Positions 8,282 through 62,700 of a DNA stretch of 64,000 nt are shown piece after piece. How positions within the stretch are numbered: the stretch's first letter is position 1; each line of letters starts with the position of its first letter. Source of the stretch: Podarcis melisellensis. Its lineage: Eukaryota. The stretch is from the NCBI GenBank assembly GCA_964234715.1, contig OZ174287.1; one strand, given 5' to 3'. Below the pieces are notes generated by a model. That model searched no databases and was not told the DNA's origin. It saw nothing but the letters and a program-made list of their open reading frames with translations. Position numbers and translations under genes: made by a program.

Positions 8282-8284
<3 letters not shown>

Positions 8285-36910: not shown

Positions 36911-39162
36911 TTGGTGAAGTTGGGGGTTGGGGCAGGGAAGGGGGAAGGATGAAAGTTCAATCACTTGCCATATGTTGAGTAGATATGGATAGGAGAAATA
37001 TGTTTCAGTTTCCCTGAAATTCCCACAATTAGTCCATTCACTATACAATTAGGTTTCTGGTAATGGCTTGGAAAGCAAATACCCTAAATAAAATAAGCAC
37101 ACATAATTGACATCAGATAATGCATCTACCATCTGGGGCTTAGTCCATATCTAGGCGGAGTACTTTTTCGATATGTTTGATTTTAAAATGAAAGGGGAAC
37201 AGAGTGCACGTTTTGCTCAAGGGCACAGACTTCGCATTGTTGATACCCAACAAGAATGACCAGCTTCCTTCAAAATGGAGTGTTTACATTGGAACATTTC
37301 CCAGTATCCTATGCTACATGAAGGGATTCCATGATAGGCAAATCCACGTGGCAAAGATTTAATGAAGCCACAACTGTGAAAATAGCTTCTATAAATTCAA
37401 ACTAGTTTCCTTTTTTAATCTACATTTAAAAATGGAACTTGGTGAAGTCCATTTTTTCCATGAAAATGAAAGATGATTTCTTTCATTCTTTCAGGGAGAA
37501 CTGAGATCTCAATCTCTTTGCTGTCCATGCTCTTTTGCTTTAGGTTTTCCTCCTACCTGGTTCAATTCCAGGATTTCCAGGATTGTTTTTAAATATGCTG
37601 TAAGCCGCCCAGAGTGGCTGGGTTGTTGATGTTGCTGTTGTTGTTGTGGCTGGGAGAAAATCTAGACAGGGATAAGGGTGGGTTTCAGCTCTCATCACCC
37701 CCCACTAGCATCCAGTTTACTCAATTATTTATTATTTGTTGAAATTATATACCACCTAATACCCAGAGGTCTCAGGGTAGTTCACATAAAAAGATCACAG
37801 TTAATAATACCTCCCCCCAAAGAGCCACATACCCCAGGGTATGTTGATCAGGTCAACCAAAGGCCTGGTTAAAAGCGAATGTTTTTGCCTGGCACTTAAA
37901 GGTTTTTAATGAAAGCGCTAGGTAAACTTCCCTGGGGAGAGCATTCCATAGACGGGGAGCCACTGCAGAGAAGGCCTGTTCTCATGTTGCCACCCTCCAG
38001 TCCTCTTGAGGAGGTGACACATGAAGGAGGGCCTCAGAAGATGATCTCATGTTCATATGGAAAGAGGCTGTTCTATCACTAGAATATTATGGAAAGAGGT
38101 GGAACCTACTACTAGAGTATTGTGTAGATAGCCCCTGGTATCTGCTACTAAACCTCTGTGGCCGCTGTATTTTTCTGGTGACAGCAATTTCCTCACACAC
38201 AGAGCAACCCCTCACAGCACTTGGGTGCTTATGGAAAAAAGACATCCACCAGGGCAGAGATAGGAGTTTTGTTTGTTTGTTTTGAAGAGCATCTAGCGTG
38301 GGTGTAAGTAGGGATGCTGGTCTGAATATCTCTTTTACAGGAACAGAGAAAATATTCTCACAGCATCCAGAGGTCTGAGTTTAAATATGTATGTCCACTG
38401 TCAGATTGTTTAAATTACACTTGATGCTTTGCATGTTTGTGTGGGGATTTTTTTTCTTAACACACACACATCACACGTCTTTTGCATATAAAGTTTAATT
38501 CAGACTTTTCACAATACAATAAAACGAAACTATTCAAAACAGAAAAGGATAAAAAGAAAAGAATGAAACAAAATAAGAAAAAGAGCCAGATGAATATAAA
38601 GTTCTCTCTCACATATATCCTAACTTTGAGCAATGAAATTTGTTTAGAAGATATATTTATTATGTAGGAACTGTATAATTATGGTCTTCCTGGGATCAAG
38701 GTCATGTCCCACCAACTTCTAATTTATTTTGGTAAGCAGAATGGTTAACTAGCACGAATTAACAAGAGTTCAATTGATTTTGATGTCCTATTTTTCAATC
38801 ATTTGGCTGCTACACCATTTTCAATCCTGCTGCAAATTGCTTTCACATAACATTCCACTTGGACAACACCCTGGTGAAGCAGACCCCTGTAAGTAACAGT
38901 ATTTATAGCCTCAGCCTAATGTGTAGCGATCAGCGTGTTGTCCTAGGTGCTGGAAAACTATGGTTCAAATCCCCATTCAGCCATGGGTCAGATGTCATCT
39001 CTCAATCTAAGCTTCTTCACAGAGTTGTTGAGAAAATAATAGCAAGAGAGGGAGAATTATGTGCTCCTTGGATGGCATAGAAGACAGAATATAAAAACAA
39101 AGGAAATAGCATCTTCTTGCCACAAATTAAGGTCTCTGGCTAATGGCATCTCTTTCACCTTC

Positions 39163-42100
39163 TCAACTATGGTCACCCTTCTTCTTTACTAGCTTCTCTT
39201 TACTGTTCATCTCAGGTCTAAGTATAATGATGTAGATTTTGGGGAGGAAGATGCAACCCAATAAGCCAGCAGTAGAGGCCAAGATGGAGAAGATCTCCAC
39301 AGCCACCATGTATTTCCCTTTGGTGCTCAGATAAGTGGGGACAAAGGACAGCCAAACACTGCAGAAGACCAGCATGCTGAAGGTAATCAACTTGGCTTCA
39401 TTGAAAGTATCAGGCAACTTCCTGGCAAAGAAAGCCACAGAGAAGCTCACAATGGCCAAAAGGCCCATGTAGCCGAGAATAAGGTGGAACATGATGTCGG
39501 AGCCTTCATTGCACTGCACTATGATCTGCCCATCCTGGGAGTGCAGGTCAAACTCTGGGAATGGGGGAGAGGATGCCAGCCACCCAAGACAGATGCCAGC
39601 TTGAATGAGAGAACAGAAGGTGATAAGGGATCCTGCCAGCCTCTTCCCAAGCCATTTCCTCAGGCTGTTCCCAGGCCTGGTCACCATGAATGCCAAAACC
39701 ACAGTGAGGGTTTTGGCTAACACACAAGCAACAGCAATGGAGAAGACGATGCCAAAGACGGTTTGCCTCAAGACACAGGTCACCTTTGTAGGCCTGCCAA
39801 TGAATAAGAAGGAGCAGAGAAAGCAGAGAAGCAGAGAAGAGAGCAAGGTGCAGGTGATGCCCCAGTTGTTGGCTTTGACAATGGGAGTGTTCCAGTGCAG
39901 ACCGAAGGTCCCCATCACAACAACAGTGACCAGGGAAAGCAGGAGAGCCAAGGAGGCCAACATTGCCCCCAAGGGCTCCTCATAGGATAGGTAGCTTATT
40001 TTTTTCGGAATACATTGGTTGTGAAAGACATTTGGGTAGTGATCATCTGGGCATTTCTCACACTGATCTGCATCTGAAAGTGAGAAGCATTCTTTTAGCA
40101 TTTCTTGAAGCAATGATTATTAATATTATTGATACCGTCTATTACAGTGGTGCCTTGCAAGACGAAATTAATCCGTTCCGTGAGTCTCTTCGTCTTGCGG
40201 TTTTTGTCTTGTGAAGCACGGCTATTAGCGGCTTAGCGGCTTAGCAGCTATTAACGGCTTAGCGGCTTTAAGAAAAAGGAAACAAACTCGCAAGAAATTG
40301 CAAGACGTTTCGTCTCGCGAAGCAAGCCCATAGGGAAATTCATCTTGCGGAATGACTCAAAAAACGGAAAACCCTTTCGTCTAGCAAGTTTTTTGTCTTG
40401 CAAGGCATTCGTCTTGCGGGGCACCACTGTATGCGGTACACGAAACATATTACTGAACTGATGAACCAAAGTCTACTTTCACAACTAAGTGATGGTTCCT
40501 CCATGAGCATCTCAGCTGTACTAATCAATCCATTCATATTTATTTGTCATGGTTGCAGTACACTGATTGATTTCAGTGTTTCCTCCTTAAACATGTCTAT
40601 CTCTGCATCCAGCCCCATGTCTTTGCATTTCAAGGCTTGCAGCCCAAGTGTTTCTACACTTTCTGTAATTGAGTTTGGGAGTAGATGAAACAGCCAGGTC
40701 ACCTGTCATTTGCTCACTGGGAAGATCTATATTTGACAAGAAATAACTTTTCCTAAGGACTGAAACTGTGTGGATACAATAGAGAAAATTGTTCACTAGT
40801 TGTTAATCACAGAAGTTGAAAATCTGTTGGCTGCTGGTTCAATGCTGACAAAAAGGGAATCTATGAAGTGCAACCCTAATTATTTCTTCCCAGATGTATG
40901 TCATCTTGATTTCAATGGTGGTTACTCCCACGTGGACGTTATTTCACACAATATACTCTTGAATGGCTATCCAAAGGGGAGGAGAGAGGAAAGGACAATA
41001 TGTATCAGTAACATATAATCACGTGTGCTTGGGATCTATGACAGAAAATAAGCAGACACAATAAGACTGAAACATGAATGTCTGTGTTGGAGAGGAAGAT
41101 GGGAATTCCAGTTGACTTGGGTTCCTTCACTTACCCTTCTGGACTGAAATCCTCCCTTTAGGGCACTGAACACAGTCATAGCAACAGATTTGCTTTCCCT
41201 GCTGGGGAAACATACTCTGTCCAGGGTGGCAGCTCTCAACACAGGTGGAAATGGGCAGCATCTAGTGGTGATGACAAGCAAGGGATTTTGAATGGAATAA
41301 GCTTGCTTCTCTACATAACTCTTATTGACATCTACGTCCGCTTTGCAGCAGAAAAGTCACAGGACTGAAATTAGCGGATGGCTGTCAAGCATTTGCTCCC
41401 TGGGCAAGCATCAGGCCCCCCAATAAAGATGCTTTGTGCTGTCACTTAACCATTTGGCCAGCGCAGCACATGTCTGAATGGTAAAGAGAAGCTAGTGCCA
41501 ACCTTCTCCATAACCCATAACCCGATGCTGATTCCCTCCTGGAGGGAGAGGAGAGCTGAAATAAGGAGCCGGCTGCTTCTCTTTCTTACCAACTTTCAGA
41601 TTAAACTATACAATGCATGTAGATGTTACTTACATTGCTAATACATCTTAGATAGATTTTTATCTAAGATAAATACTGTTACAGACTGAGAGCATCACAA
41701 GAGAACATTCCCGCTGCTCTAACTGTTTAGACTGCTCATAACTGCCAAAGCTGTAGAAATTTACATAACTATTCCCTCTTATGTGTGCTTTTTGTGGGGG
41801 GGCCATTGTGTTTTTTATTTTCATTATGTTTTATGTATGTATTCATTATGTATTTTATGGTTTTATATGTTGATTTTACTCTGTGAACTGCCCTGAGACC
41901 TCCAGTTATATAGCAGTTTATAAACTCATTCATTCATTCATTCATTCATTCATTCATTCCATCCATCCATCCATCCATCCATCCATCCATCCATCCATCC
42001 ATTAATTTCTTCAGGCATATGACAGCACAGCATTCTATAGCCTTCTGAGCATTAGCCCTTTCGTTAGCCTTTTGCATGCTTTCATCCCACGCATTATGGC

Positions 42101-45100
42101 CAAGCCTGCATGGAGTTTGGCCTCACCAACAGCCTGATGGAGACCAACCTCCTGGGACAGGATATCACCGGTACTCCATCAACATTAGTGACCACACACT
42201 TCAGGTGGTAGATGATTTTCTTTCTACTTGGCTCCACATAGTGGGACAGAGTCTGAAACCATGATTGTTGCCAACAACGCATTTTAGAGCACAACAGTCC
42301 CTTTTCAAGAGCTTTAAACACTTGCCAATTCCTCACTCAGAAAGACCTTGTTCTTAACCCTAAACTCCCAATTAGCTTCAAACTAGCTCTGGATCAACAA
42401 ATTTGAACAAAGTAACAAAGATAGTATTTGATCTTGTTAACAATGAGGTGACAGAGGAATTTAAGATAGAAAAAGGGACACGACAAGGCTGTCCAATTTC
42501 CCCATTGCTTTTTATATCGGTCCTGGAGGTTCTGTTGAATATGATCAGAAGGGACCAGTTGGTTAAAGGTATACAAGTCAGAGCTAAACAGTACAAACTG
42601 AAAGCATTTGCAGATGACTTAGTATTGACATTACAGGAGCCAGAATCTAGTACTAAAAGAGTTTTGGAACTGATTCAAGAATTTGGTCAGGTTGCAGGAT
42701 TTAAACTGAATAAGTTAAAAACAAAGGTTTTAGAGAAAAATTTAACAGCGATTGAAAGAGAGAGGTTTCAGAATGAGACAGGATTAACAGTAGTTAAGAA
42801 AGTGAAATACCTGGGGATTAACATGACAGCTAAAATTGGGAACTTATTTAAAGACAATTATGAAAAATGCTGGACGGAAGTGAAAAAAGATTTAGAAATT
42901 TGGTCAAATTTGAAGCTTTCACTGTTAGGCCATATTGCTGTGATAAAGATGAATGTATTGCCAAGAATGTTATTTCTGTTTCAAACATTGCAAATTCTGG
43001 ATAAAATGGATTGTTTCAAGAAGTGGCAGAGAGATATTTCTAGATTTGTCTGGCAGGGCAAGAAGCCCAGAATAAAATTTAAAATATTAACAGATGCAAA
43101 GGAAAGAGGTGGATTTGCCCTGCCAGACCTTAAACTTTATTATGAATCAGCAGCTTTCTCCTGGTTGAAAGAATGGCTACTTCTTGAAAACACAGACATC
43201 TTGGACTTAGAAGATTTCAATAATGTATTTGGATGGCATGCATATTTATGGTATGATAAGGTCAAAGCACATAAAGCATTTAAAAACCATATTGTCAGGA
43301 AAGCATTGTTTAATGTCTGGATAAGATATAAGGACTTGCTTGAAAATAAAACCCCAAGGTGGTTGTCACCAATGGAAGTGAAGGCTCAGAAAAAGCTCAA
43401 TATGGAGGCCAAATGGCCGAAATATTGTGAAATTTTGGAACAAGTGGGAGACAAACTGAAATTGCAGAGTTATGAAAAACTAAAAAACAAAGTGCGAGAT
43501 TAGCTTCATTATTATCAAATAACGGAGGCATACAATTTGGACAAAAAAAATGGATTCCAGGTGGAAAAAGACTTTGTCAAGGATGTATAACTTGCTGTTG
43601 AAATGGAATACTCAGGATGAAACAGTGAAATCAGCTATGATTAAATGGGCACAGGATGTTGGACATAATATTATGATGGCTGACTGGGAACAGTTATGGA
43701 CCACAGGTATGAAGTTTACAGCATGTAATGCTTTAAGAGAGAATATTATGAAAATGATATACAGGTGGTACATGACACCAGTCAAGCTTGCAAAAATATA
43801 TCATTTGCCCGATAATAAATGTTGGAAATGCAAAGAGACTGAAGGTACATTCTTTCACCTTTGGTGGACGTGCCCAAGGATTAAGGCTTTCTGGGAGATG
43901 ATATATAATGAAATGAAAAAGGTATTTAAATATACCTTCTTGAAGAAACCAGAGGCCTTTCTCCTGGGCATCGTCGGCCAATTGGTGCCAAAGAAGGATA
44001 GAACTTTCTTTATGTATGCCACAACAGCAGCAAGAATACTTATCGCAAAGTATTGGAAGACGCAAGATCTACCCACTCTGGAAGAATGGCAGATGAAGGT
44101 GATGGACTACATGGAATTGGCGGAAATGACCGGCAGAATCCGAGACCAGGGAGAAGAGTCGGTGGAAGAAGACTGGAAGAAATTTAAAGTCTACTTACAG
44201 AAATACTGTAAAATTAATGAATGTTAGAATGATGTTGGATAAGAAGTTAAGTGGTTTTTAGCTGTAATGCTATAAAGGAATATGAAAAAATGGATTATTA
44301 ACAGGTAAAAATTTAATGTTATAATACTTTAAGATTAAAGGATTATAAAGGAGGGAAAGGATTTGCTGAACTAACAAATTGAATTGGAATACAAAAAAGG
44401 GAGGTGTGAGGAGGTCCGGGAAACAAGCAAATGAAAGATAAGTAATGGAAAGATGGAATTGTTTTTAACTATTTTTATTTTGTATTTTTCTTTTTTCTTT
44501 TTTCATTTTGTAATATTTTGAAAATCTTAATAAATGTCTTTTTTTAAAAAAAAAAGATAGTATTTGATCATGGAGTACTAGAGCTTTCCTCCCCACACTT
44601 CTCCTTTGTAGCCCTCTGTGTTTTTCTGGATCCCCTGATCTTCTCATTAAAGATGATGATGGATGATAATTAAAACAAAAAAATGGTCACACCCACCTGC
44701 TTGAACTTGGGATTCCATGCAATGGCACTTCCATCCACTGTGAACTCTTTTCCTGGGGGGGCCTGAGGGTCCATTCTCCCCACTCGGACTCTCTGGAAGG
44801 ACTTATTGGGAAATGTGACCAAGTTGAGGAGATCATAGCCACCTGCCTGCTGCCCCTTCTCATCCAAAGAGATTTCTTCCCCAGCACTGTTGTTGAAGTG
44901 GATGTTCTTCAGGAAGGAGTGAAGCTAGATTGCAAGAGGGGAAAAAAAACACAGACCTTGGAGGCTAATACACTCTCTCTTTTCGATTTCCCAGTTGGAC
45001 CTTTGGCTTTTTACTACCATTCATCAGTATGTTCTAGGATGCTGAAAGCTGCCCTGCAGGGAGTCAAATCATTGCTCTATATAGCCCAGTCATTTCTACA

Positions 45101-48100
45101 CTGGTTGCTATTGGCTCTCTAGGGTTTCAGAGCCTTTCCCATCATGATCTTGAGATGCTGGGGGTTGAACATGGGACCTTCTGAATGAAAACAGATGTTC
45201 TGCCATTGAGCTGTAAGCCTTTCCAGTTCCAATATTAAGAGGCATGACTTGGTATGCTTTTCGACTTGCCATGGATTCTGGGTAATTCAGAAACCTCCTC
45301 CATTAACACCTGAAACTGCCTTGTGCTGAGTCAAACCATTGTTCTCTGTAGCCCAGAACTGTCTACTCTGAATGGCCACAGTTCTATTTGGCATACATTC
45401 AAGGTTTCAACTGAGTTCTTATAACAGAGGACACCCCTCATCCTTGTACAGCCCCAAGTAGGAGAATCCTGGATGGATTAATTTAAAGAGCTTTGAATGT
45501 GTAGCTTCCAAAGCATGTGGCCTTTAACTGAGATCAAGTCCCTCCCAATGATAGAGCTCACCAGTGAAAATCCCCAAGGTCTCTCCTCTACGCCAAGGCT
45601 CAGCTGTGAAACATATGAACCAGTAATAATAACTCCTGTGCTTCTAACACAGATAAGAGTAGTTGACAGTACCTGCCAGGGCTTAACTTTTGGCTGCGTC
45701 CATCTCTCACCCAGTACTTTCTGTTTGGTTCTTGAGGAATACATGCTATGGAGAGCATGTGCTACTGCATGGACGGCATTGTAGATGGTGTAGCTCTGGC
45801 TGGACATTTCCATTTCAAACACGGGTCCAGTGAGTTTCTCAAGCTTCTCCCTCCCAGTGCAGGGTTCATGAGTTGTGTGAATTAGATTGTGATCTGGGAA
45901 TGAACAGAGGAATGCACTGGCCCAGAACTGCTGAATGAAATAAAGATTTGGCTGCCATGGATTTATGGTCTGTAGAAAGTCCTGAAACCCTGGAACTGGA
46001 TTTGAATGGAGTGTAAATGACAAAGTGCCATTGAAGGATTTTGAAGGAAAATTGCCTCCAGCCAGCACTGCAGTGAAATCCCATTGAGCTATTGTAATCC
46101 ACACCCTCTCCACTGGGTACATAGAGAAAACCTCAAGGGAGACTAAAACCAGTCTCAAAGCCTCTAGAGACTGACTGTCTCCATAGACAAGAATCACATT
46201 CATTTGCTGCTGTGTGAGAACAAACATGATTGGTCTCAACTTTTGTTGAAGTAGCTCATTAGGTAAAAAATTTGTCACTAGTGGGATCACCAGTGTCCAA
46301 GAAATACAAAGATTATTCTGGGAAAGCCTTGGTCTGAGAGTATGAAGGAAGGTTTCTCCACTGTCATCATCTGAAACAAGGAGGCCAATCCAGTTCCACC
46401 CAAACTTCCTGAGTAGCCAGACAATGCCATCATACTGAGCTTCTTCATTGGGGACCATTTGGAAGAAGGAAGGGAAGTGCCTTTGGTCACTCAGCCCTGG
46501 ATCCAAGGAGCCATAGCTGAGCTAAAGGGAAAGGCATTCTATTTTTAAGAATCCAAAGACCGTCTATTTGTTCCTAGAAAGAATACTTCTGTATTATGGT
46601 AGTTATCCACCTGGTCTTACTTTTGTAAGTATACACCCCTGGCATTTTAAGTCTCAGGCTGGGAGAAGTTTCTAAGCAGGAAGCTGGATGCTCCTATGAT
46701 TACATGATTTGTGACATGGCCAGGTTTGGAAGAACCAGAGCTTGGATTATTAGTATTATGGATTTACTCCCCCCCCAAAAAAAAAATCCCAATGCAAATT
46801 GAGACGGTAGTGTTGGCAACACATAGCTAGGAGGCTTTAACATAATCATGTACCCATACCTAACGTAGGACATATGTGTAGAAAACATAATGTAATGGGA
46901 TTGAAAGCTAACCTGGATGCTTTTTGACGTTTTCTGTGTATGTCTGACCTTGTGGTTGTATCTATGTATCTAAACACATACCTGTGGAATCTTGTAGGTG
47001 TTTAATATATTGGCCATCTGAATGGAGTTTTGGGAGGTGAGCCCTCCAACAACGGCAATTAATCTATCTTCCCCATTACAGTGGTAATTGGGGAGATTTC
47101 GTTGTCCCATGAAAAGAAGAGCAAGAGTGTTCCAACAAGTTTGTGAAGGATTAAAACCATTCTCATAAAATGTTGATCCCAGTGTGATGTTGGATAAGAA
47201 TTTGGCATTCTTGTTGATCTCTTGCATAGCAAAGATGAAAGCAAGAACATGCTGGTAGTTTTTTGGGAGGACTCTGCAATGAGACAAAGAATGACTGCAA
47301 ACATGACAGAAGAGAAACAACTGTGTTGAAGTTTTCATTTTGATTCATGCATGTATTTAACTTGGATGTTTCAGCCTACACGACAAGAACATTCCATTCA
47401 AACTAATATACTACAGCAGTCTCCTAAGATACTATGATTAGATGTTCAGTATGTAAATAGTAGATTCAAGGAGATCCATTGTTGTGCTGTGGATAAATTG
47501 ATGGGGTTGGATATTGGAAACTCAGAAACAAAAAGTTGTTAACCTGCCAAGTTCAGTCAGGCTCTAATTCTTTCCCCACTTAACTAGGTTCAAAATCACC
47601 AACACAGTGGGATTTAATACTGAGTAAATCATTGCATGTTCCCAACACTACCTATGCCTGTTTCTTATACACAATGTTCACGCCTACCTCTTGTTCTGCT
47701 GCTTTGTCCATCACCTCCCTTCCATTTCTGAACCATGAAGTATTCATGGGAAAGTGTTCGCAATTCAACTAGGGATACAACTCTTTAGTATACCAGTGTG
47801 CTTTAACACACAATGTCTTTTTAGCAGCCCTTGAATCTAAGCCTTATAGATATGCTTTCCTTTTTAAAAAAACAAAAAAACAACTTGGGAAGCTAAATCT
47901 TCCTCCTCTTTTTTTATTCAATGGGATTCGCTTCCCATATAATCATGCAAGGCATTATAGGGTGTGATACACAACCTTCCATTGGAAATTGCTTATTCCC
48001 ATGTAAACATGTGTTAAGGAAATCTCTCCTTGATCCCAAATATTTAAGAGGAAGCATCCCACTTACCTGGGAGTAAGTACCACTAAGCTCAGTGGTGATT

Positions 48101-49152: not shown

Positions 49153-51020
49153 GTTTACCTATATTCACTAACAGCATTTCAGTCTTGGCTGAAGTTATAA
49201 GGAAACTTGGCTGCATGGAGGCATGTACCTGCCTCAAATCTACCTCCCTTACTGGATTTATGTAATGTGATAGGACAGGTGCCTATATAGACTACAACAC
49301 AGGACCATCACATTTGGAAAGGGCTGTTTCTATGGCTTATATTGTGCCTGGCATCTGATTTGCCATGGGACATTTAAAAGTAGTGATGCTGATCAATAAT
49401 TATAAGAATTACAGGGTGAAGTATTTGTTTTGCTAAGGTCCTCAGGTCTCAGAACAAGCAAAGTTCTTACCCTCTAAAATGTGGCTCTTTTGGGGGGTTG
49501 GTGGGGGTGTTATTGCAGTATTGTTTTTATTTTTATTTTGTATATTGTGATCTTTTTTGTGAACCGCCCTGAAACCTCTGGGTATATGGTGGTATATAAA
49601 TTCAATAAATGAAATGGAATGGTTTCTTAGGAGGGGGTCCAGGAGTGCACAATGACCATTCCCCACATTAACTGGAGGGCGGCTTTTGCATGGTTGCACA
49701 CAGCCTCCCCCGGGACTATGAGACTCCTGGCTAGGCAGCTTGGCTTTGCTGACCCTCCTCCCCCCTAAGCTGGATACCTTGAGGTTCCCACCTAGCCTTA
49801 ACAATTAGCCAATCGTGGTCGGGAGGCCATTGCCAAAAGGGGGTCTCAAAAATGGTCAGGGGGATACCTCCCACAGAGACACATCTGTCCTTTGGGTTGA
49901 TGTTCTATTGATAACAATACCACCTGAAGATTTCTCTCTCTCCAAGCTGACTTGGAAGCTAGATTTCTATGTGGGTCTGAATACCCCCATACACATTCAA
50001 GGGGAACATTTGTCTCCCAAACAAGGGAGTTTACATTCTCCATTATATTTACTCTCGGCCTCAAAGCACCCACAGAGCCACAAACAGCAAGATGACTATT
50101 TATTAGGCATCCTGTGGAATGTGCTCAGAAGCAGCCCTGGGGTTGTTGTGCCTGACCACATGATGACATCTGGCTGTGTCTATAAACATGAACTCTGTAC
50201 ACTGGGACAGAACTGAGTGGGGAACCAGAGTTGCGAAAGTGTTGGGGGAAGCATTCCAAGCTGCTAGACATTAATGCTAAACCATATGCGCTCTATATTG
50301 TGAATACCATATGGGTGGGGGTTAAATGGAAGGAGAAAATCTAGACATTTGGGGGATGGGGAAATGGAAAAAAAGGAGAAAGGCAGTGGTGACAGCTCCC
50401 CACCCTAATATTTGACTGCTATGCCTTTCTTGCTGAAACCTGGTTTTGCTGCAGTCATGAGCATCAAAAAAACTCCTATCCATCTCCCAGCAGACACTAA
50501 GTCCCCCCCCCCAACAATGATTCACTTGGAATAACCATATGCCACCATGTAGTATAATTCCTGGCAGGAAATGGTTGTAGCCTACCTGCTCATAAAACGT
50601 GTTGCAGACACTGAGTGCCAATTGGATCTAGCCAGGACCTCAACTTTTATCTCCAATGAATCGTCCAGGTACTCTGCCTCCCCTATGGTATGTCTAGCTA
50701 AACTTGAAGTCCCTAAGCGCTGGAGGGCCTTTACCTTGGCCCTTCAGCTGTCCTTGAAGGCTGATACAGGAAGATTGCTTACCTGGAGAAACAATGCGCC
50801 TGTGACTCTGGACAAATAGAAACAACAGACAGACATTGCTGGTTTAACAGAATCAAAGCAGGTTTCTTTGCCACTATGGTTTAAGGGTGTTTTCTTTGTT
50901 TGTTTTTTAATTGCAGTAAAGCAGAGCTGGACAGAATGGCAGCAAAGGGGGGGGGGGTTTCTTGCAAGGGATGGCATAATTGTTAAAAAGCTGAATATTT
51001 GGATCTGGGCATTGGAAATC

Positions 51021-51464
51021 TTACGCTGTGACGATGATGCTTTCGTCAAAGTGCACAGGCTCATTATTCTGATTACAGGCAATGACAATGTATCTGGACG
51101 ATCTGTTATTGGAGTACTCGCAAGGTGGGCGAGTTGAGCCGCCTTTGTGCTTGCAGGTGGTGACAGTGATGGGGCGGAGAGCAATCCTCAGCCCATTCCC
51201 ATAATCCTCCCCTCCAGATTCAGTGCACACAGATTTGATGTTATTCTTGGTGCCGTGGATGAAGGTGTTCACTTCCTTGCATGGTTTGTCCAGCCCACGT
51301 CTTTTCATCATGACGTCACAATACTGCTTTCCAACGTTGCTCTTGGGATTATCGTAGTGCTGCCTTAGGAACTTCTCATAGGGGGTTTCACAATAGGCTC
51401 CCAGTGCCAGAACAGACACCAGAAAGGAGAGGAGCACAAGGCCAGATCCCTTGAAAGGCATCAT
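51021..51464 (-). CDS. Secreted RNase A-family ribonuclease, angiogenin-like, 147 aa, single coding exon
   Basis: Signal peptide MMPFKGSGLVLLSFLVSVLALGAYC. Catalytic H (RQHY), K (CKEVNTF) and H (PVHFD); 6 Cys in the mature chain. Acceptor tctctttcag| at 51481, 16 nt before the ATG. ATTAAA at about 50906. Confidence 0.95.
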   Translation of the reverse strand: MMPFKGSGLVLLSFLVSVLALGAYCETPYEKFLRQHYDNPKSNVGKQYCDVMMKRRGLDKPCKEVNTFIHGTKNNIKSVCTESGGEDYGNGLRIALRPITVTTCKHKGGSTRPPCEYSNNRSSRYIVIACNQNNEPVHFDESIIVTA

Positions 51465-52457
51465 CGTGGGCGACCGCTGCCTGAAAGAGATACCTGGGGG
51501 GAAAGTAAAGTGGGTGTGTAAATGCTTTCTTTCTGTTTGCCACCAGAGGGTGCTTTGTGAAACAGCTTGGACTTCAAATGAATGCTGTACTGTATATCCT
51601 TGCAAATTCTTATCTGCAAATGTTGTGGTGGATGTTATCTAGTCATGATCACATAACCATGTGAATATTGATACAAACCAGTCACCATGCATCATTCTTG
51701 TTTGTAAACCCAATAAAAAAACCAATATAAAAGAAGAAGCTTGGACCATTGTTGAGGGTCAGGGAGAAGGAGGCAAAGAAGATAGGATATTTGTACAAGC
51801 TCAGTTAAGTTTCTGGCTGAAGTGAGATGTGCGCAAGGGACTCACTGGTATGAAACTGAGCTCCAGACTAGCACTGAGAGACCAGGGTTCAAATCCCCAC
51901 TCAGCCGTGAAGCTCATTGGGAAACCCTGGGTCAGTCTTAGTCTCTTACCCTAGCCTGCCTCACAGGATTGATGAGAGGATTGCCTGAAGGAGGAGAACG
52001 ATGGATCCATCCATCCATGGATCCATCCATCCATCTCCCTTTTGTATAAACTCCCTTAAAATCCTTCTGAAAGTCTTCATCAAGCGCCACCAGCAGCTCA
52101 ACAAGACAGCGGGGTATAAGATTTATTTCTTAACCTTTAGGTTAAAGTGCTGTACACTTGGGAACACCATGAACTTTAAGTAGCTGGGTTGGTGTTGCAG
52201 CGTCGGTAGATTTAAACAATTGTTCCAATTGTTTATTTTGCCTGCTATAATCTTTTGCCTGCTATAATCTTTTCGCATAGACTTTTACATAAATGCATCT
52301 TAAGCCCCCCCCCTTTTCTAGTAGGATTTAGTAAGAGCTAAATTGGAGTCACTTTTACATGTGCAATTTGTGCACACAACAGCTCCCTCATCTTGTGGTT
52401 TAACGTTGTATGTTCACCCCTCTTAAAAATATCTATTCCCCTAATAATAACTGCTTG

Positions 52458-52886
52458 CTTGTGTATTCTCCTCACCATAGAGAAAGTGTTGACTAAGGAA
52501 TGTAGAAAATGTAAGATTAGAAAGCAAAAATAATCCAGACTGTTTATTCTTCATGTGCCTCCTAACTTCTGAACCTAATGCTGTCATTTGTTCTCTTTTA
52601 AAGAAACCGTTTACAGTTTTGTGAAATGGAATGATAGAAACTGCAACCAACTCAACAGCTACATCTGCAAGAAAAAAAATCTAATCCAGCAACTGTCATT
52701 CCCAACTGTGCCTTCTGTGATTGATGGACAACTCTCTGGAATCATTACCTCCTCTCCAACCCCTCAATGATCAACTCTCATCCATTATTGAGGGGCAACA
52801 TTTCAATATGAGTAGGGAAATGAGAGTACTCCTAAACATTTTAAAGAAAAAAAGCACTGCCCATTGCAATGTACATTAACTAATTT
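52458..52886 (+). pseudogene. Inverted orphan copy of the CTL-C terminal exon with flanks
   Basis: 52458-52788 is the reverse complement of about 20360-20032 (exon from 52604: ETVYSFVKWNDRNCNQLNSYICKKK, with +1 nt before the stop). It is fused to the reverse complement of about 17190-17093. Confidence 0.88.
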
Positions 52887-53343
52887 TCTCCCAGGAAAGA
52901 CGCGTGGCTTGGGCATGCTGCAGGCCCCGCGGTGAGTGCTGCCTGGCATTTGGTCACCCCCTCAGTGGTGACACCTGGGGCGCTACGCCTCCACCGCACC
53001 CCCTTGCTCTGTCCCAGGGTAGCCCACTAGCATTAGCAATAAAAAAAGGAGATGTGGAGATGGCAGAGGCAGGACAGAGGTGGCCTTGCATGTGCTGAAT
53101 AAAAATCACTGGAATTATCAGGGTGTGTCCCATCCCCCCCAGTGATCTTAACCCATCTTACAAAGCTGGAGAAATTCAATGGGAAATTCAGCTGTGTTGA
53201 AAAATTCAAAGGGAGACAAATTTCAAAGGGTGGCTGTGTTTCAGCTCTCATATTGTGTCAGATACTACAAATTCAATTAAGTTTGCCTTTAAATGGAAAC
53301 TGAACTGAATTTCTCCCCAACTCCAACCCAACCCCAACTCCAG

Positions 53344-53940
53344 CTTACCCAGGTGCTGTCCTGTTGAAGTGATGGATTTCCTCTTTCTACAACTCTGTCT
53401 CCCAAGTTGGCTGCCTTAATTCTTATATGGAGCTTAGTCAGGTCAGAGACAGGGGAAAGGAGGAAGGAATTTCAGCCTTTTAGATATATGCAGAGTACAT
53501 ATGAAGAAAGAAAGGATGTACTTCAAATACTCATAGAAACACATGATTTGGTTGCATGAATGTATTTGTGTGGAAGGTGATGGGAAAATAAATATTCTAA
53601 ATACAATAAAAAGACTTAACTAAAAGAACAAGTCTAGAAACAAAGAACAGGTCTACAATCTGGAGATACTGTAAAACGAAATCCAGGAGGGGCACTTCCT
53701 TCACCACTTTCTATTTTGAAACTGAAAGATCTCAGTGAAGTGGGGTGCTGAGTCTGCTCCAAGGGCACACCCTCACTTCAGGTAGTGCATAGTTAGCCTG
53801 AAACAAGACTGGCCTGCATCCTTCAGAAATGGAGAGACTGCCTTGGAATCTTTCCCAGAATCCTCTACCACATGCAAGACTGAGTCATAGCAGAAGAGTC
53901 AATGTGGCAAGAATTCCATAAAACCGAAACTGTGGAAATC
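53344..53940 (-). promoter_or_regulatory. CTL-type proximal promoter and non-coding exon 1 now upstream of the RNase exon
   Basis: TATAAG at 53422-53427; donor GTAAGC (cttac at 53344-53348). TTCCCAGAA (53852-53860) and TGAGTCA (53881-53887) are retained. Confidence 0.7.
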
Positions 53941-54364
53941 ACTTGCATTATTCATTTTTTTTAAACTGGGGGTTGACGAGGTCTAGATTTTAGAAGAAAA
54001 TGGGAAATGACTGAGGGGAGCTAAACTCCTCCCCCCTCTTTGCCTCCTCATGCTATTTAACTTCCCCCTCCTTGGCTCAGCTGGAATATAAGTAACTGTG
54101 GTGATGGAGGGTGGGGAGCTTAAATGGGGAGTGTTCTGCTTCTTCTACTACACCCATGCCCTTGCTTTCTTCTCCTCAACTTCTCAACCCACAAACCCAC
54201 ATAGTATATATATATTTACTTACCTGCGAGAACTGAATGAGACTTTGATGGAAGAAGGATGTGGACAGATATGTGGGTATAGGGTATAATGCTAGTGAAA
54301 GGCCCCAATACAAAATATAAATCAGTAGCCATAGCATCAGAAGTGAGTTTCTGATTGTCTCCAA

Positions 54365-54455
54365 CTTACCCAAGTTTTGTCCTGTGAGGTGATGGATATC
54401 GCGTTATGCAGGGGCAAGTTTGTCTCTGAAGCTGCTGCCTCAATTCTTATATAGA
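54365..54455 (-). promoter_or_regulatory. CTL-type distal TATA and non-coding exon 1 module (copy 2)
   Basis: CTATATAAG at 54446-54454, donor GTAAGT (54365-54369); paralog of 36818-36910. Confidence 0.68.
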
Positions 54456-56330
54456 TCTTGGTGAAGTTGGGGGTTGGGGCAGGGAAGGGAGAAGGATGAA
54501 AGTTCAATCACTTGCCATATGTTGAGTAGATAGTGATAGGATAAATATGTTTCAATTTCCCTGGAATTCTCTCCAGTGTGGACTTAATTTACATGTTGAG
54601 TAGATATCGATAGGATAAATATGTTTCAATTTCCCTGGAATTCCCTCCAGTGTAGACTTAATTTATGGTTATGACCACTATACAGTTATGTTTCTGACAA
54701 TGGGTTGGAAAGCAAATACCCTAAATAAAAAATAAGCACACATAATTAACATCAGATAATGCATCTGCCTTCTGGAGCTTAGTCCATATCTAGGCGGAGT
54801 ACTTTGTTCAATATGTTTGATATTAAAATGGAAGGGGAACAGAGTGCACCTTTTGCTCAAGGGCACAGACTCACTTTGCATTGTTGATACCCAACAAGGA
54901 TGGCCAGCTTCCTTCAAAAGGGAGTGTTTACACTGGAACATTTCCCAGAATCCTCTGCTACATGAAGGGATTCTGTGACAGGCAAATCCGCATGGCAAAG
55001 AATCCACAACTGTGAAAATAGCTTATGTAAATTCAAGCTAGGTGTATATACATATCTACATTTAAAAATGAAGTTTGGTGAAATTAAAAGATGCTGCAGG
55101 GGGAACTGAGATTTCAATTTCTTTGCTGTCCATGCTCTTTTGCTTTAGGTTTTCCCCCTCCCTGGTTCAATTCCAGGATTTCCAGGCTTCTTTTTTAGAT
55201 ATGCTATAAGCCGCCCACTCTGGCTGGGATGTTGTTATGATTGTGATTGTGATTATTATGGCTGGGAGAAAAGCTAGACAGGGGTGAGGGTGGGTTTCAG
55301 CTCCCATCACCCCCACTAGCATCCAGTTGACTCAGCTACTAGAGGATTGTGTAGCTAGTCCCTGATATCAGCTACTAAAACTTTGTGGCTGCTGTATTTT
55401 TCTGGTGACAGCAATTTCCTCACACACAACCCCCCACAACATCTGGGTCCTTATGGAAGGATGGCACTCACTTGTGCAGAGATGGTTTTTATATATGTAT
55501 AAAGAGTATATAGTGTGTGTGTAAGTAGGGTTGCTGGTCTTAATATCTCTTTTACAGGAACACAGAAAATATTCTCACAGCATCCACAAGTCTGAGTTTA
55601 AATATGTATGTCCACTGCCAGATGATTTATATTACGCTTGATGCTTTGCATGTTTGTATGGTCCATTGGGGATTTTTTTCTTAAAACACACACACACACA
55701 CACACACGTCACATGTCTTTTTTTGTATAAGGTTTTATTCAGACATTTCACAATACAATAAAAAGAAACTATTCTAAACAGAAAATAATAAAAAGAAAAG
55801 AACAAAACAAAAGAAGAAAAAGAGGTAGATGAATACAAAGCTCTCTCTCGTATATATCCTAATTTTGAGCAATGAAATTCATTTAAAAGATACCTCTATT
55901 ATTTAAGAACTGTGTGGTTATGGTCTTCCTGGGATCAAGGTCATGACCCACCAACTTCTAATTTATTTTGGTAAGCAGAATGGTAAACTAGCACGAATTA
56001 ACAAGAGCTCAAATGATTTTGATGTCCTATTTTTCAATCACTCAGCAGCTACTCCATTTTCAATCCTGCTGCAAATTGCTTCCACATGACATTCCATGTG
56101 GACAACACCCTGGTGAAGCAGACCCCTGTAAGTAACAGTATTTCATATTCTGCTCTCTTTAGTTTGTGTTCTGGGGGTATAGAAAGGTAGGCCAAAAAAC
56201 AAAGATTAAGTCAACAAAACAACATACATAAAAATCTCTCAGTCTAACCTACCTCACAGAGTTGTTGTGAAGGCAATACAGAGAGAGAAGAGCCATGTAT
56301 GCCACCATGAACACTTGGATGGCATAGAAT

Positions 56331-56466
56331 AGGGGTTTCCAAACTTGGGTCTCCGGCTGTTGTTGGACTACAGTTGAAAACATCCATAGCTGGCAAGGCT
56401 AGTTGTCAAGGATGGTGGGAATTGTAGTCCAAAAACAGCTGGAGACCAAAGTTTGGGAATTGCTGG
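56331..56466. mobile_element. hAT-like palindromic MITE
   Basis: ccaaacttgggtctccggctgttgttggactaca / tgtagtccaaaaacagctggagaccaaagtttgg. Confidence 0.65.
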
Positions 56467-56743
56467 CATAAGGAGAAAAAGACAGAAGCAAAGGAAATAG
56501 CATCTTCTTGCCACAACATAAGGTTGTGGGAAACTACGGTTCAAATCCCCATTCAGCCATGGGTCAGATATCATCTCTCAATCTAAGCTTCTTCACAGAA
56601 TTGTTGAGAAAACAATAGCAAGAGAAGGAGAATTATGTGCTCCTTGGATGGCATAGAAGACGGAATATAATATAAAAACAAAGGAAATAGCATCTCCTTG
56701 TCAGAACATAAGGTCCCTGGCTAACGGCATCTCTTTCACCCTC

Positions 56744-59700
56744 TCAACTATGGTCATCCTTCTTCCTTACTAACCTCTCTCTACTGTTCGTCTCAGGTCT
56801 AAATATAATGATGTAGATTTTGGGGAGAAAGATGCAACCCAGTAAGCCAGCAGTAGAGGCCAAGATGGAGAAGATCTCCACAGCCACCATGTATTTCCCT
56901 TTGGTGCTCAGATAAGTGGGGACAAAGGACAGCCAAACACTGCAGAAGACCAGCATGCTGAAGGTAATCAACTTGGCTTCATTGAAAGTATCAGGCAACT
57001 TCCTGGCAAAGAAAGCCACAGAGAAGCTCACAATGGCCAAAAGGCCCATGTAGCCGAGAATAAGGTGGAACATGATGTCGGAGCCTTCATTGCACTGCAC
57101 TATGATCTGCCCATCCTGGGAGTGCAGGTCAAACTCTGGGAATGGGGGAGAGGATGCCAGCCACCCAAGACAGATGCCAGCTTGAATGAGAGAACAGAAG
57201 GTGATAAGGGATCCTGCCAGCCTCTTCCCAAGCCATTTCCTCAGGCTGTTCCCAGGCCTGGTCACCATGAATGCCAAAACCACAGTGAGGGTTTTGGCTA
57301 ACACACAAGCAACAGCAATGGAGAAGACGATGCCAAAGACGGTTTGCCTCAAGACACAGGTCACCTTTGTAGGCCTGCCAATGAATAAGAAGGAGCAGAG
57401 AAAGCAGAGAAGCAGAGAAGAGAGCAAGGTGCAGGTGATGCCCCAGTTGTTGGCTTTGACAATGGGAGTGTTCCAGTGCAGACCGAAGGTCCCCATCACA
57501 ACAAGTGTGACCAGGGAAAGCAGGAGAGCCAAGGAGGCCAGCATTGCCCCCAAGGGCTCCTCATAGGATAGGTAGCTTATTTTTTTTGGAAAACATTGGT
57601 CCTGAAAGGCATTTGGGTAGTAATCATCTGGGCATTTCTCACATTGATCTGCATCTGAAAATGAGAAGCATGCTTTTAGCATTTCTTGAAGCGATAATTA
57701 TTAATATTATTGATACCATCTATTATGCGGTACACAAAACGTATTACTGAGCTGATGAACCAAAGCCTAATTTTTCAACTAAGTGATGGTTCCTCTCTGA
57801 ACATCTCAGCTGTATTAATCAATCTATTCATATTTATTTTTCATCGTTGCAGTATACAGATTGATTTCAGTGGTTCCCCCTTAAACATGTCTATCTCTGC
57901 ATCCAGCCCCATGTTTTTGCATTTCTAAGCTTGTGGCTCAGTGTTTCTTTTTTACACTTTCCGTAATGGAACTTGGGAGTGCATGAAACAGCCAGGTAGC
58001 CTGTCATCAGGAACATCTATATTTGACAAGAAATAACTGTTCCTAATGATTGAAATTGTGTGGATACAATAGAGGAGATAATTTACTATTTATTAATAAC
58101 AGAAGATGAAAATGTGTTGGCTGCAGTTTCAATGGTGAGAAAAGGGAACCTATGGCATGCAATCTTAACCATTTCTACCCAGATGTATGTCATGCTGATT
58201 TCAATGGTGCTTACTCCCATGTGGATGTAATTGCACACAAGATATGCCTGAATAGCTGTTCAAAAGTTAGGGGAGAGGAAAGGAGAATATGTGTCAATAA
58301 CATAAACACATGTGCTTGGGATCCATGACAGAAAATAAGCAGACATAATAAGACTGAAACATGAATGTCTCTGTTGGAGAGGAAGATGGGAATTCCAGTT
58401 GACTCGTGTTCCTTCACTTACCCTTCTGGAGTGAAATCCTCCCTTTAGGGCACTGAACACAGTCATAGCAACAGATTTGCTTTCCCTGCTGTGGAAACAT
58501 ACTCTGTCCAGGGTGGCAGCTCTCAACACAGGTGGAAATGGGCAGCATCTAATGGTAATGACAAGCAAGGGATTTTGAATGGAATAAATCTTATGTCCGC
58601 TTTGCAGCAGAAAGGTCACAGGATCGAAATTAGAGAATGGCTGTCAAGCATTTGCTCCCTGGGCAAGTATCAGGCCCCCTGATAAAGATGCTTTGTGCTG
58701 TCCCCGAACCATTTGGCCTGTCCAGCACATGTCTGAATGGCAAAGAGAAGCTTGTACTAACCTTCTCCTTCTTGATAAATTGATTCCTCATAACCCAATG
58801 CTGATTTCCTCCTAGAGACGCTCTCTTTTAAAGTTTAAATAAGAATAATTTTTTATTTAGTGTACTTGAAATTGCAGATTAATACATACAATGCATGTGG
58901 GTGTTACTTACATTGCTAACATATCTTACATAGATTTTTATCTAAGATAAATACTGTTACAGACTGACAGCAGCACAAGAGAACATTCCTGCTGCTCTGT
59001 TTAGACTGCTCATATTTGCCATAACTGTACAAACTGACATAACTATGCCCTTTTAAAATGTGTTTTTTATATGTTGGTTTTAATCTCTGAACATCCTTGA
59101 GACTTCTGGGTATCGGGCAGTATATAAATTTAATCAATCCATCAGTTAATATCCTCTGACATATGACAGCACAGGGTTTTTTAACCTTCTGTGCACCAGG
59201 ACTTTCCTTAGCATTTTGGATGCTTTCATCCCACACATTATGGCTCAGCCTGATGGAGACCAACATCCTGGGACAGGATATCACCAGCACTCCATCCATC
59301 AACATCAGTGACCACACACTTCAGGCAGTGGATAATTTTCTTTCTACCTGGGCTCCGCATGGCAGAGATTGTTGGCAACAACGCATTTTAGAGCACAACA
59401 GTTCCTTTTCAAGAGCTTTAAACACTTGTCAATTCCTCACTCAGAAAGACCTTGTTCTTTAATCCTGATCTCTGAATTAGCCTCAAACTAGCTCTGGATC
59501 AACAAAGCAACAAAAACAGTATTTCATCAGTGAGTACCAGAGCTTCTCTCCTCACACTTCTCCTTTGTAGCCATTTCTGTTTTCCTGGATCCCCTGATCT
59601 TCTCATAAAAGATAATGATGATGGATGATTATTAAAACAAGAAATAGTACCGCCCACCTGATTGAACTTGGGATTCCATGCGATGGCACTTCCATCCACT

Positions 59701-62700
59701 GTGAACTCTTTTCCTGAGGGGGCCTGAGGGTCCACCCTCCCTACTCGGACTCTCTGGAAGGACTCATTGGGAAATGTGACCAAGTTGAGGAGATCATAGC
59801 CACCTGCCTGCTGCCCCTTCTCATCCAAAGAGATTTCTTCCCCGGCACTGTTGTTGAAGTGGATGTTTTTCAGGAACAAGTGAAGCTAGATTGCAAAAGG
59901 AAAAAAGACACAGACCTTGTAGGCTAATACACTCTCTCTTTTCCCTTTGACAAGTGGACCTTTGGCTTTTTACTACCATTCATCAGTATGTTATAGGACA
60001 CTGACAGCTGCTTTACAGTGAGTGAAATCATTGCCCTAAATAGCTCAGTCACTGATTGTTATTGGCTCTCTAGGGTTTCAGAGTCTTTCCCAGCATGATC
60101 TTGAGATGGTGGGGATTTGAACATGGTCCTTTTTGAATGAAAGCAGATGCTCTGCCATTGAGCTGTAAGCATTTCCAGTTTCAATATTAGGAGACATGAC
60201 TTGGTATGTTTTTAACTTGGCATAGATACCAGGTAGTTCAAAAAACTCCACATTAACATATGCAACTGCCTTGTGCTGAGTCAAACCATTGTTTTCTGCA
60301 GCCCAGAACTGTCTGCTCTGAATTGCCACAGTTCTATCTGGCATACATCTGAGGTTTCAACCCATTTCTGATACCAGAGGAGAGTCCTGGCCCTTGCACA
60401 GTCCCAATTAGGAGAATCCTGGGATGGATTAATTTCAAGAGCTTTGAATGTGCAGCATGCAATGCATGTGGCCTTTAACTGAGATCAAGTCCCTCCCAAT
60501 GATAGAGCTCACCACTGGAAATCCCCAAGGCCTCTCCTCCATGCCACGGCTCAGCTGTGAAACATATGAACAGTAATAATAACTTCTGTGCTTCTAACAT
60601 TGAGGAGGGTAGTTGACAGTACCTGCCAGGGTTTAACTTTCTGCTGCATCCATCTCTCAGCCAGTACTTTCTGTTTGGCTCTTGATGAATACATGCTATG
60701 GAGAGCATGTGCTACTGCATGGACGGCATTGTAGATGGTGTAGCTCTGGCTGGACATTTCCATTTCAAACACGGGTCCAGTGAGTTTCTCCAGCTTCTCC
60801 CTCCCAGTGCAGGGTTCGTAAGTTGTTTCAAGTAGATCTGGGAATAAACAGAGGAATGCACTGGCCCAGAACTGCTGGATGAAATAAAGATTTGGCTGCC
60901 ATGGATTTATGGTCTGTAGAAAGTCCTGAAACCCTGGAACTGGATTTGAATGGAGTGTAAATGACAAAGTGCCATTGAAGGATTTTGAAGGAAATTTGTG
61001 TCTAACCAGCACTGCAGTGAAATCCCATTGAGCTGTTGTAATCCACACCCTCTCCACTGGGTACATAAAGAAAACCTCACAGGAGACTAAAACCAGTCTC
61101 AAAGCCTCTAGAGATTGACTGTCTCCGTAGACAAGAATCACATTCATTTGCTGCTGTGTGAGAGCAAACATGATTGGTCTCAACTTTTGTTGCAGTAGCT
61201 CATTAGGTAAAAAATTTGTCACTAGTGGGATCACCAGTGTCCAAGAAATACAAAGATTATTCTGGGAAAGCCTTGGTCTGAGAGTATGAAGGAAGGTTTC
61301 TCCACTGTCATCATCTGAAACAAGGAGGCCAATCCAGTTCCACCCAAACTTCCTGAGTAGCCAGACAATGCCATCATACTGAGCTTCTTCATTGGGGACC
61401 ATTTGGAAAAAGGAAGGGAAGCGCCTTTGGTCACTCAGCCCTGGATCCAAGGAGCCATAGCTGAGCTAAAGGGAAAGGCATTATATTTTTAGGAATCCGA
61501 AAACCATCCATTTATTTATAGAAAGAATACTTCATTATTGTGGTGGATGACCACCTGCTCTTACTTTTCTAAGTATACACCTCTGGCATTATTAAGTCTC
61601 AAACTAGGAGAAGTTTCTAAGCAGGAAGCTGGATGCTCCTATGATTACATGATTTGTGGCATGGCCAGGTTTGGAAGAACCAGAGCTTGGATTATTAGTA
61701 TAATGGGTTTAAGCCCCCCGCCCAAATCCCAATGCAAATTGAGACGGTAGTGTAGAAAACATAATGTAATGGGATTGAAAGCTAACCTGGATGCTTTTTG
61801 AGGTTTTCTGTGTATGTCTGCCCTTGTGGTTGTATCTATGTATCTACACACATACCTGTGGAATCTTGTAGGTGTTTAATATATTGGCCATCTGAATGGA
61901 GTTGTGGGAGGTGAGCCCTCCAACAACGGCAATTAATTTATCTTCCCCATTACAGTGGTAATTGGGGGGATTTCGTTGACCCATGAAAAGAAGAGCGAGA
62001 GTGTTCCAACAAGTTAGCAAAGGATTAAAAGCATTCTCATAAAATGTTTTTTTTTTTAAATAATTTTTATTAAGGTTTTCCAAATTAAAACAAATAAAAT
62101 CCAATTCATAAACTTTTTCCAATATCCAGGACTTCCCCTCCCCACCCCCTCTTGTGTTCCAAATCTTCCAAAAAAGCAATAATATTCAACAAATTCTTAT
62201 TCCCAAAATACACTCATCATCAATAACTCAATTTATCCAAATTTCCATCCCCTAAGGTCGACCTATTCCCTTCCACGAGTTCCCCCCTTTCAAATATAGT
62301 ACAGATAAAAATAGAATAAAAACAAACAATAATTTTACAACCTTTGGATTCCAAATTTCCCTCCCCTCTTTCCCTGTTGCGTTCCTCTTATCCCTCCACT
62401 TCTAATGTCTTCCTGATGAACCCACATTTCACTAAACCCACATCCCTCTGGTTCTTTACCGGTCTTTTTTTTTTAAATTACAGATGTCCAATCATAGAAG
62501 GAGTCTATCAAAGGGGGCCCATTTCTTCTATCCAGATTTTTATATCCAGGAGTATAAACTCCAATTTTATATCCATAAGCTTGTCAAATCTGGATATCCC
62601 AAATGTTCCCACTCCAGTTCTGTCCAGTTCTTGTTGTTTCCTTGTTCTTGTCAATCACTCTCCTCCTTTTTACTTCCCTGTTCCCTCACAGAAATGTTCT

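Follow-up and report, generated by a model that had tools for sequence, protein, structure and literature searches.

A 64,000-nucleotide (nt) stretch of contig OZ174287.1 from the lizard Podarcis melisellensis (assembly GCA_964234715.1), here referred to as the window, carries an intact exon for an angiogenin-like RNase A protein behind two copies of a promoter module that elsewhere heads C-type lectin genes. Each module combines a TATA box, a short ATG-free stretch resembling a first exon, and a GTAAG splice donor. The site is an old composite locus within a cluster of V2R, C-type lectin, and RNase A genes. Judging from the assemblies of three lizards belonging to two genera, the juxtaposition of modules and RNase is real and predates the split between Lacerta and Podarcis; the first-pass annotation of this DNA had proposed a new chimeric gene, and at such an age the word "new" no longer applies. 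We further propose, tentatively and with somewhat less than even confidence, that the RNase in the window is transcribed from the lectin-type modules.

The modules stand out clearly from the surrounding sequence. The TATA pattern occurs five times and the exon pattern four times in the window, compared with chance expectations of 0.04 and 0.01, respectively. Six module copies could be aligned, one on the plus strand (at 9.4 kilobases [kb]) and five on the minus strand (at 25.5, 36.1, 36.9, 53.4, and 54.4 kb), and every one of them contains a TATA box, an ATG-free stretch of about 50 nt, and a G/GTAAG donor (the slash marks the exon end). Both extra modules that the first-pass annotation had reported upstream of the RNase were recovered by the pattern counts and by the alignment. 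The proximal module (53349-53429, minus strand) starts with a CATATAAG box at 53429-53422 and the distal module (54370-54453, minus strand) with a TATATAAG box at 54453-54446; in each, an ATG-free exon-1-like stretch follows, the last exon bases being 53349 and 54370 with the donors directly after them. Three of the modules sit 0.4 to 1.9 kb upstream of a lectin exon that carries the ATG and signal peptide. The later exons of these three lectin genes match the Lectin_C profile exon by exon (profile positions 9-107), and annotated lectins of P. raffonei, P. muralis, and Zootoca map onto the lectin exons of the window. We infer from this layout that the modules are transcribed first exons of lectin genes. 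The likeness between module types is limited to a core that reaches from about 70 nt before the TATA box to just past the donor, a pattern to be expected if a working promoter and exon are under constraint.

The two extra modules belong to a segmental duplication. In a self-BLAST comparison, 35754-47174 (copy 1) matched 53017-62048 on the minus strand (copy 2) at 82-96%. Copy 1 leads into a lectin gene with exons at 31.2-34.2 kb (CTL-D of the first-pass annotation), and in both copies a V2R-type receptor gene that looks complete precedes first a distal and then a proximal module. The homology of copy 2 to lectin intron 1 ends at 53017, 331 nt into the intron (53018-53348, minus strand, homologous to 35754-36072 of copy 1), precisely where the likeness to CTL-D had been said to stop. 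Also as claimed, no sense lectin exon was found between the modules of copy 2 and the RNase, only an antisense fragment of a last exon. The intron lengths given at first pass proved exact, the stretch from 53348 to 51481 measuring 1868 nt and intron 1 of CTL-D, from 36072 to 34153, 1920 nt. The upstream promoter block of the proximal module (53431-53995, minus strand), with TTCCCAGAA at 53852 and TGAGTCA at 53881, was likewise reported correctly as retained here and lost from the CTL-D promoter: the block, about 490 nt long, is kept in copy 2, in the 25.5-kb lectin gene, and in P. raffonei, and is deleted in copy 1.

The RNase itself is encoded by an uninterrupted open reading frame (ORF) of 147 codons plus stop within a single exon (51021-51464, minus strand). 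It matched the Pfam family RnaseA (PF00074) at 1.6e-31 with 109.7 bits, against a cut-off of 23.1, over profile positions 1-121 of 121, which bears out the earlier description of the exon as intact. Its best structural relatives are solved angiogenins, and the QH, CKEVNTF, and PVHFDES segments align with 4qfi and 3zbw. By this alignment, the protein possesses the catalytic His, Lys, and His residues and the CKxxNTF signature of the family, and the mature part of the translation contains the six Cys residues (three disulfides) of angiogenins and non-mammalian RNases. In the database, the RNase comes closest to proteins labeled "angiogenin-like" from Podarcis (93%), Zootoca (83%), and Lacerta (80%), among them the P. 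muralis angiogenin-2-like protein with 93% identity; an identical protein was absent from the database searched. A search of partial proteins with the N-terminal 82 residues of the RNase found no lacertid fragments.

In the RNase A family, a noncoding first exon typically precedes a single coding exon. The coding exon of the window copy begins with a short 5′-untranslated region (51465-51495, minus strand), where two strong acceptors, AG at 51495-51494 and AG at 51482-51481, precede the ATG at a spacing of 13 nt. The strong acceptor that had been predicted 16 nt before the ATG is indeed present; the acceptor in use, as far as both an RNA contig and a Zootoca isoform tell, is the second one, 13 nt further upstream. 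To look at transcripts, reads and contigs were placed on 50600-56500 from the contig sets X1 and X5 (RNA by our guess), the raw RNA sequencing run X23, and the DNA run X18, all from a species about 1.4% diverged from the window. One 298-nt contig of X5 matched 51223-51493 and stopped exactly at 51493, directly behind the upstream acceptor; the RNase family is spliced between 51494 and 51493. The Zootoca protein isoform X1 (MPGISF...) requires the same upstream acceptor. Most RNase paralogs retain at least one of the two acceptors, usually both. Depending on which of the two acceptors is joined to the canonical first exon deduced below, the outcome would be an in-frame MPG... extension or else a short upstream ORF that ends at the main ATG. 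At the other end of the exon, ATTAAA at 50906-50911 (minus strand) is a candidate polyadenylation signal.

Between the modules and the RNase lie three segments of different origin. The first is the end of a repeated element (52787-53017, no strand assigned) that marks the stop of homology with copy 1; it consists of a high-copy piece (52787-52888), which reached a depth of about 17,000 in the DNA run, and a 130-nt GC-rich piece (52888-53017). The repeat region is common to the orthologous loci of P. raffonei (L007) and L. agilis (L010), and in L. agilis the GC-rich piece forms the arms of an inverted repeat (L010:7005-7075 and 8239-8309) bracketing 1.2 kb, which is probably a DNA transposon that inserted in lectin intron 1. 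The second segment is the antisense lectin relic (52459-52789, plus strand), a last exon with its flanks that is 95.5% identical to 20030-20359 and covers Lectin_C profile positions 87-107. The third is about 1 kb of RNase-family upstream or intron DNA (51496-52472, minus strand). Its homology ends at 52472, and it is shared by L010, by four canonical RNase loci (L001-L003 and L005), and by a further Zootoca locus (L009), all of which are described below. It holds a short interspersed element (SINE; approximately 51727-51990) and a tract, 51521-51640, that is nearly identical to canonical paralogs and extends across the acceptors and, within the coding exon, as far as about 51221.

The true orthologs of the window RNase are XP_053216783.1 of P. 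raffonei (L007) and protein P0005 of L. agilis (L010), and the order V2R, modules, RNase is common to all three loci. L007 is collinear with the window from 60329 to 52800, with 95.5-95.8% identity at aligned bases and including both modules and the 53017 junction, and is collinear again from the RNase down into copy 1. Between these collinear stretches, the antisense lectin body of P. raffonei is longer than that of the window, and the RNase upstream DNA of this species is limited to about 110 nt. In L. agilis, the V2R gene is followed by an intact distal module, a proximal module with its TATA box deleted, the repeat with inverted arms, a piece of the intron of the 9.4-kb module, a piece of a long interspersed element (LINE), and finally the RNase with its 1 kb of upstream DNA; lectin exons are absent from the interval that separates modules and RNase at this locus. 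The TATA box, exon, and donor of the distal module are intact in both P. raffonei and L. agilis. The intervening DNA has been rearranged repeatedly in each lineage. In the window (52459-52789) and in P. raffonei (L007:7403-9803), complementary parts survive of a single antisense lectin gene, itself a copy of the lectin gene at 20-25 kb; in L. agilis, no such remnant lies between the modules and the RNase. This distribution suggests that the antisense lectin inserted in the Podarcis lineage and then suffered differing deletions.

At the orthologous site, the RNase ORF is intact in all three species. The ratios of nonsynonymous to synonymous substitution (dN/dS) across them were 0.39 (p 0.01), 0.54 (p 0.047), and 0.66 (not significant), and the first two values indicate mild purifying selection on the ORF. 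Moreover, the residues TESGGEDYG and CEYS are common only to the window RNase and its P. raffonei ortholog, which shows that some of the gene has been evolving in place without decaying.

We compared the window with the canonical RNase loci of P. muralis (L001), P. raffonei (L002), P. lilfordi (L003), and Zootoca (L005), which are mutually collinear over 20 kb. The canonical proteins resemble the window RNase at 93-94% (P. muralis XP_028559946.2 and P. raffonei XP_053217063.1) and 83% identity (Zootoca XP_034991791.2), and their genes share its tandem acceptors and 1 kb of upstream DNA. In contrast, the surroundings differ: the window has only 49468-52472 in common with these loci, which carry a LINE fragment, and none of the four has a lectin-type module within 10 kb upstream of the RNase. 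A canonical first exon could be deduced from the Zootoca RNase isoform that starts with MPGISFRRRLPT ahead of the usual MMPFK. The Zootoca genome has no ATG at that place directly upstream, and a unique ATGCCCG/GTAAG sequence is found 4.1 kb upstream (L005, about 5850-5907), which yields exactly M-P-G when spliced to the upstream acceptor. The donor of this exon is retained in all three Podarcis loci (L001-L003). We infer that the canonical exon 1 lies at −4.1 kb and ends in ATGCCCG/GTAAG. No match to it was found anywhere in the window, and so the RNase unit of the window appears to lack the only 5′ exon that can be deduced for the family, other native 5′ exons being possible. We also considered an inversion, given that 424-1059 of the window matches DNA upstream of canonical RNases, and rejected it: this stretch encodes a LINE endonuclease-like sequence equidistant from the Podarcis and Zootoca copies and represents a repeat rather than synteny.

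A second locus of Zootoca provides a related arrangement. The RNase XP_034957416.2 (P0133; L009, OY735914.1) has a 6-kb upstream flank that is collinear with window 4341-10113 and contains a module of the 9.4-kb (lectin-A) type with intact TATA box and GTAAG. The module is followed by a LINE piece and the RNase upstream DNA, so that the donor lies 2.25 kb before the RNase exon with only intron-like DNA in between. The stretches compared were L009:7103-10001 and window 8800-10113. The gene behind this flank and module is a C-type lectin in the window and in P. raffonei (L012), and the lectin intron 1 of the window retains the first 90 nt of the LINE piece of L009. L012 is collinear with window 97-25911; within intron 1 of this plus-strand lectin gene, the window has a tandem duplication (9750-10017 and 10116-10373, 90% identity) that is single copy in P. 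raffonei. Homologous cassettes thus precede an RNase in one lizard and a lectin in others, and the two families appear to have exchanged partners, although the Zootoca flank could be a paralogous copy rather than a strict ortholog, given the duplicated cluster. Pieces of the A-type intron accompany the RNase unit in L. agilis and P. raffonei as well; capture may have run in either direction, with either family as the first owner of the cassette. The idea, put forward at first pass, that 5′ modules can be exchanged between families fits this comparison of flanks.

Taken together, these observations establish that a unit of V2R gene and lectin promoter underwent duplication and that copy 2 has no lectin body left save for the antisense relic, the intact angiogenin-like RNase now being the next sense coding exon. 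This RNase came with about 1 kb of its own upstream DNA and without the 5′ exon deduced for the canonical locus. We propose that its transcripts would start at the distal or the proximal TATA module and be spliced from the donors after 54370 or 53349 to one of the tandem acceptors (51494 or 51481), 1.9 to 2.9 kb away; such an mRNA would carry a leader free of ATG and come under lectin-type regulation. Use of the modules is favored by the sense orientation, by good donors and acceptors, and by the ATG-free leader; by the loss of the canonical exon 1 and the presence of an intact, mildly constrained ORF behind modules in three species; and by the Zootoca case together with the core-only likeness between module types.

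Several observations weigh against transcription from the modules. No read of X23 fell on the RNase or the modules, and X1 had nothing on the RNase at 95% likeness. RNA depth on the exon of the proximal module was zero in X1, X5, and X23. The depth in the bin of the distal exon is explained by a contig that lies upstream of the TATA box, from 54473, and none is attributable to the exon; the loose end of this contig is identical in X1 and X5, and its depth ratio equals that of a second contig of this kind. Among the joints displayed in X1, X5, and X23, none linked a module to the RNase, which was itself hardly covered. The X5 contig shows an insertion of 3 nt after 51281, characteristic of the Podarcis proteins with 148 residues and absent from the window copy, and may derive from an RNase paralog rather than from this locus; its 24 further upstream letters had no visible depth anywhere in 50600-56500. 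The proximal module has kept its TATA box and donor in P. raffonei, and its TATA box is deleted in L. agilis. Alignment of the window, P. raffonei, and L. agilis revealed no conservation peak at either module, the degree of conservation of the modules not exceeding that of their flanks. An unrecognized start could reside in the upstream DNA retained from the RNase family. Finally, over its 5′ half, the RNase region matches canonical paralogs at 98-100% identity: 51221-51640 differs from those of Podarcis by 0-3 positions per 60 nt, compared with 2-8 in the rest of the coding sequence and the 3′-untranslated region. This segment, which spans the acceptors, signal peptide, and first half of the RNase, looks like a gene-conversion tract, and conversion could keep even an unexpressed copy intact. 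A clean switch between paralogs was rejected, as the 3′ half shows no clearly greater likeness to the P. raffonei ortholog, leaving only a conversion tract.

These observations bear on four other explanations. The RNase may have a start of its own within 51494-52472, or just upstream without an intron, or may use an unrecognized short exon, such as one ending in the SINE-borne CCA/GTGAGT donor near 51845; the modules would then be orphan promoters. The retention in the window and in L. agilis of roughly 1 kb of the upstream DNA found at other RNase loci, the near identity to canonical paralogs of the 200 nt before the acceptors, and the lack of RNA on the modules all speak for such a start. 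However, the sole 5′ exon deducible for the family lies at −4.1 kb, outside the retained DNA, and the P. raffonei ORF is intact with only about 110 nt of upstream DNA. Other paralogs bear insertions between approximately −110 and −310, which makes this an improbable place for a core promoter. Near 52350, a candidate for a native exon was discarded, its donor being GT in the window and GC in P. muralis, and the X5 contig departs from the genome at the acceptor instead of running on. On balance, we consider an own start rather unlikely. It is somewhat less likely still that the RNase copy is silent or barely expressed, with its ORF refreshed by gene conversion and the modules decaying as lectin relics. 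The near-identity tract would be expected in this case, as would the missing conservation peak at the modules, the lost proximal TATA box of L. agilis, the repeated rearrangement of the intervening DNA in each lineage, and the absence of RNA from the raw RNA sequencing run and one contig set. Nevertheless, the ORF, its catalytic residues, and its six cysteines are intact in three species, two of the dN/dS values are significantly below 1 (p 0.01 and 0.047), and the residues shared with P. raffonei speak of evolution at the site without decay.

A start still further upstream, with the RNase joined to an unannotated exon beyond 54.5 kb or, through read-through or alternative splicing, to the V2R gene, seems quite improbable. 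The two genes do lie on the same strand, 5.3 kb apart, both in the window and in L. agilis, but the last V2R exon ends in a stop codon and we identified no donor toward the RNase. Least probable by far is an assembly error at 52.4-53.0 kb, a possibility raised at first pass, by which the RNase would not truly lie beside the modules. The fine junctions at 52789/52800 and 52459-52472 are indeed private to the window assembly. At the variant positions listed in 52572-52731, the sole X18 contig resembles a paralogous lectin gene, with 12 differences in 268 nt, and then runs into unlike sequence, so that these private junctions remained unconfirmed in that species. On the other hand, P. raffonei has the 53017 junction as well as the repeat as far as 52800, and the order of modules, RNase, and copy 1 recurs in both P. 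raffonei and L. agilis. Furthermore, the entire 64-kb window is collinear with P. raffonei 41.968-42.031 Mb, which makes gross misassembly unlikely. Transcription of the RNase from the lectin-type modules, at the tentative level stated at the outset, is the reading we prefer.

Further features of the duplicated copies and modules deserve description. The V2R gene of copy 2 (56744-61465, minus strand) comprises a seven-transmembrane (7TM) exon at 56744-57682 (7tm_3, 1.4e-83) and a ligand-binding exon at 60551-61465 (ANF_receptor, 1.4e-35) and ends 2.3 kb upstream of the distal module. The two copies of the V2R-type gene (39073-47174 and 56663-62048) both have open 7TM and ligand-binding exons and are each followed by paired modules, the repeating unit of the cluster being a V2R gene plus a lectin promoter. 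Just upstream of the distal module, 54519-54665 is a tandem duplication of 74 nt with 94% identity between units, one of which is absent in L. agilis. The donor sequence GGTAAGTTGG has a complement in two module types, a CCAACTT... stretch located 40-80 nt upstream (arms 54361-54374 and 54457-54470, and 9366-9375 and 9419-9428); in the 9.4-kb copy, the transcript would include both arms. Contigs of the two unrelated data sets X1 and X5 match 53824-53890 and 54473-54540 in the promoter flanks and then run into the same unlike sequence, which is absent from the window and from all fetched loci. A mobile-cassette origin of the modules was considered and dropped, since no terminal inverted repeats bracketing them were found.

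A broader scheme, which we regard as doubtful and put forward with more reserve than transcription from the modules, is that lacertids possess a limited set of related, interchangeable cassettes of TATA box, ATG-free exon, and GTAAG donor that serve both lectin and RNase A genes within one cluster. Intron-to-intron rearrangement would have moved the gene bodies behind these cassettes, the gene driven by a homologous promoter would be an RNase in Zootoca but a lectin in Podarcis, and the window RNase would be under lectin control. As to where such RNases are expressed, a weak hint comes from the femoral gland secretion of P. muralis, one peptide of which was assigned to angiogenin by proteomics (PMC6557888). 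If transcripts bear out the use of the modules, the locus would be a clean natural case of regulatory rewiring in which the protein is unchanged, and would explain how co-regulation arises in tandem clusters of secreted effectors, lectins and RNase A proteins being two gene families of host defense or secretion. An RNase A coding exon requires only an acceptor and can therefore plug in behind any promoter that ends in a donor. With three species sharing the same juxtaposition and a fourth carrying a homologous cassette with the other partner, the gain, loss, and reuse of 5′ exons become datable and testable. Considered without transcripts, the locus is a well-documented structural arrangement.

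By analogy, the nearest precedent would be the mammalian pair ANG and RNASE4, listed as a promoter-sharing pair with correlated expression (PMC2568002). There, a single-exon RNase A protein is reached by splicing from upstream noncoding exons shared with another gene, and the Zootoca locus, with a lectin-type exon 1 followed by an RNase exon, has a similar layout. The mammalian partners differ in being both RNase A paralogs whose sharing is shown by transcripts, whereas the partners in the window are C-type lectins, the lectin body is gone, and the locus is known from DNA alone. More generally, duplicated genes and retrogenes recruit foreign promoters or first exons. As in the window, a coding unit copied without its first exon lands in sense behind the promoter of another gene, and expression becomes possible through a new intron without constraint on the reading frame. 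The locus described here differs from such cases in that it arose by DNA-level, intron-to-intron rearrangement within a tandem cluster, is at least as old as the Lacerta/Podarcis split, and has putative expression. Seen against these systems, the exchange between lectins and RNases would be a new example of the known recruitment of first exons.

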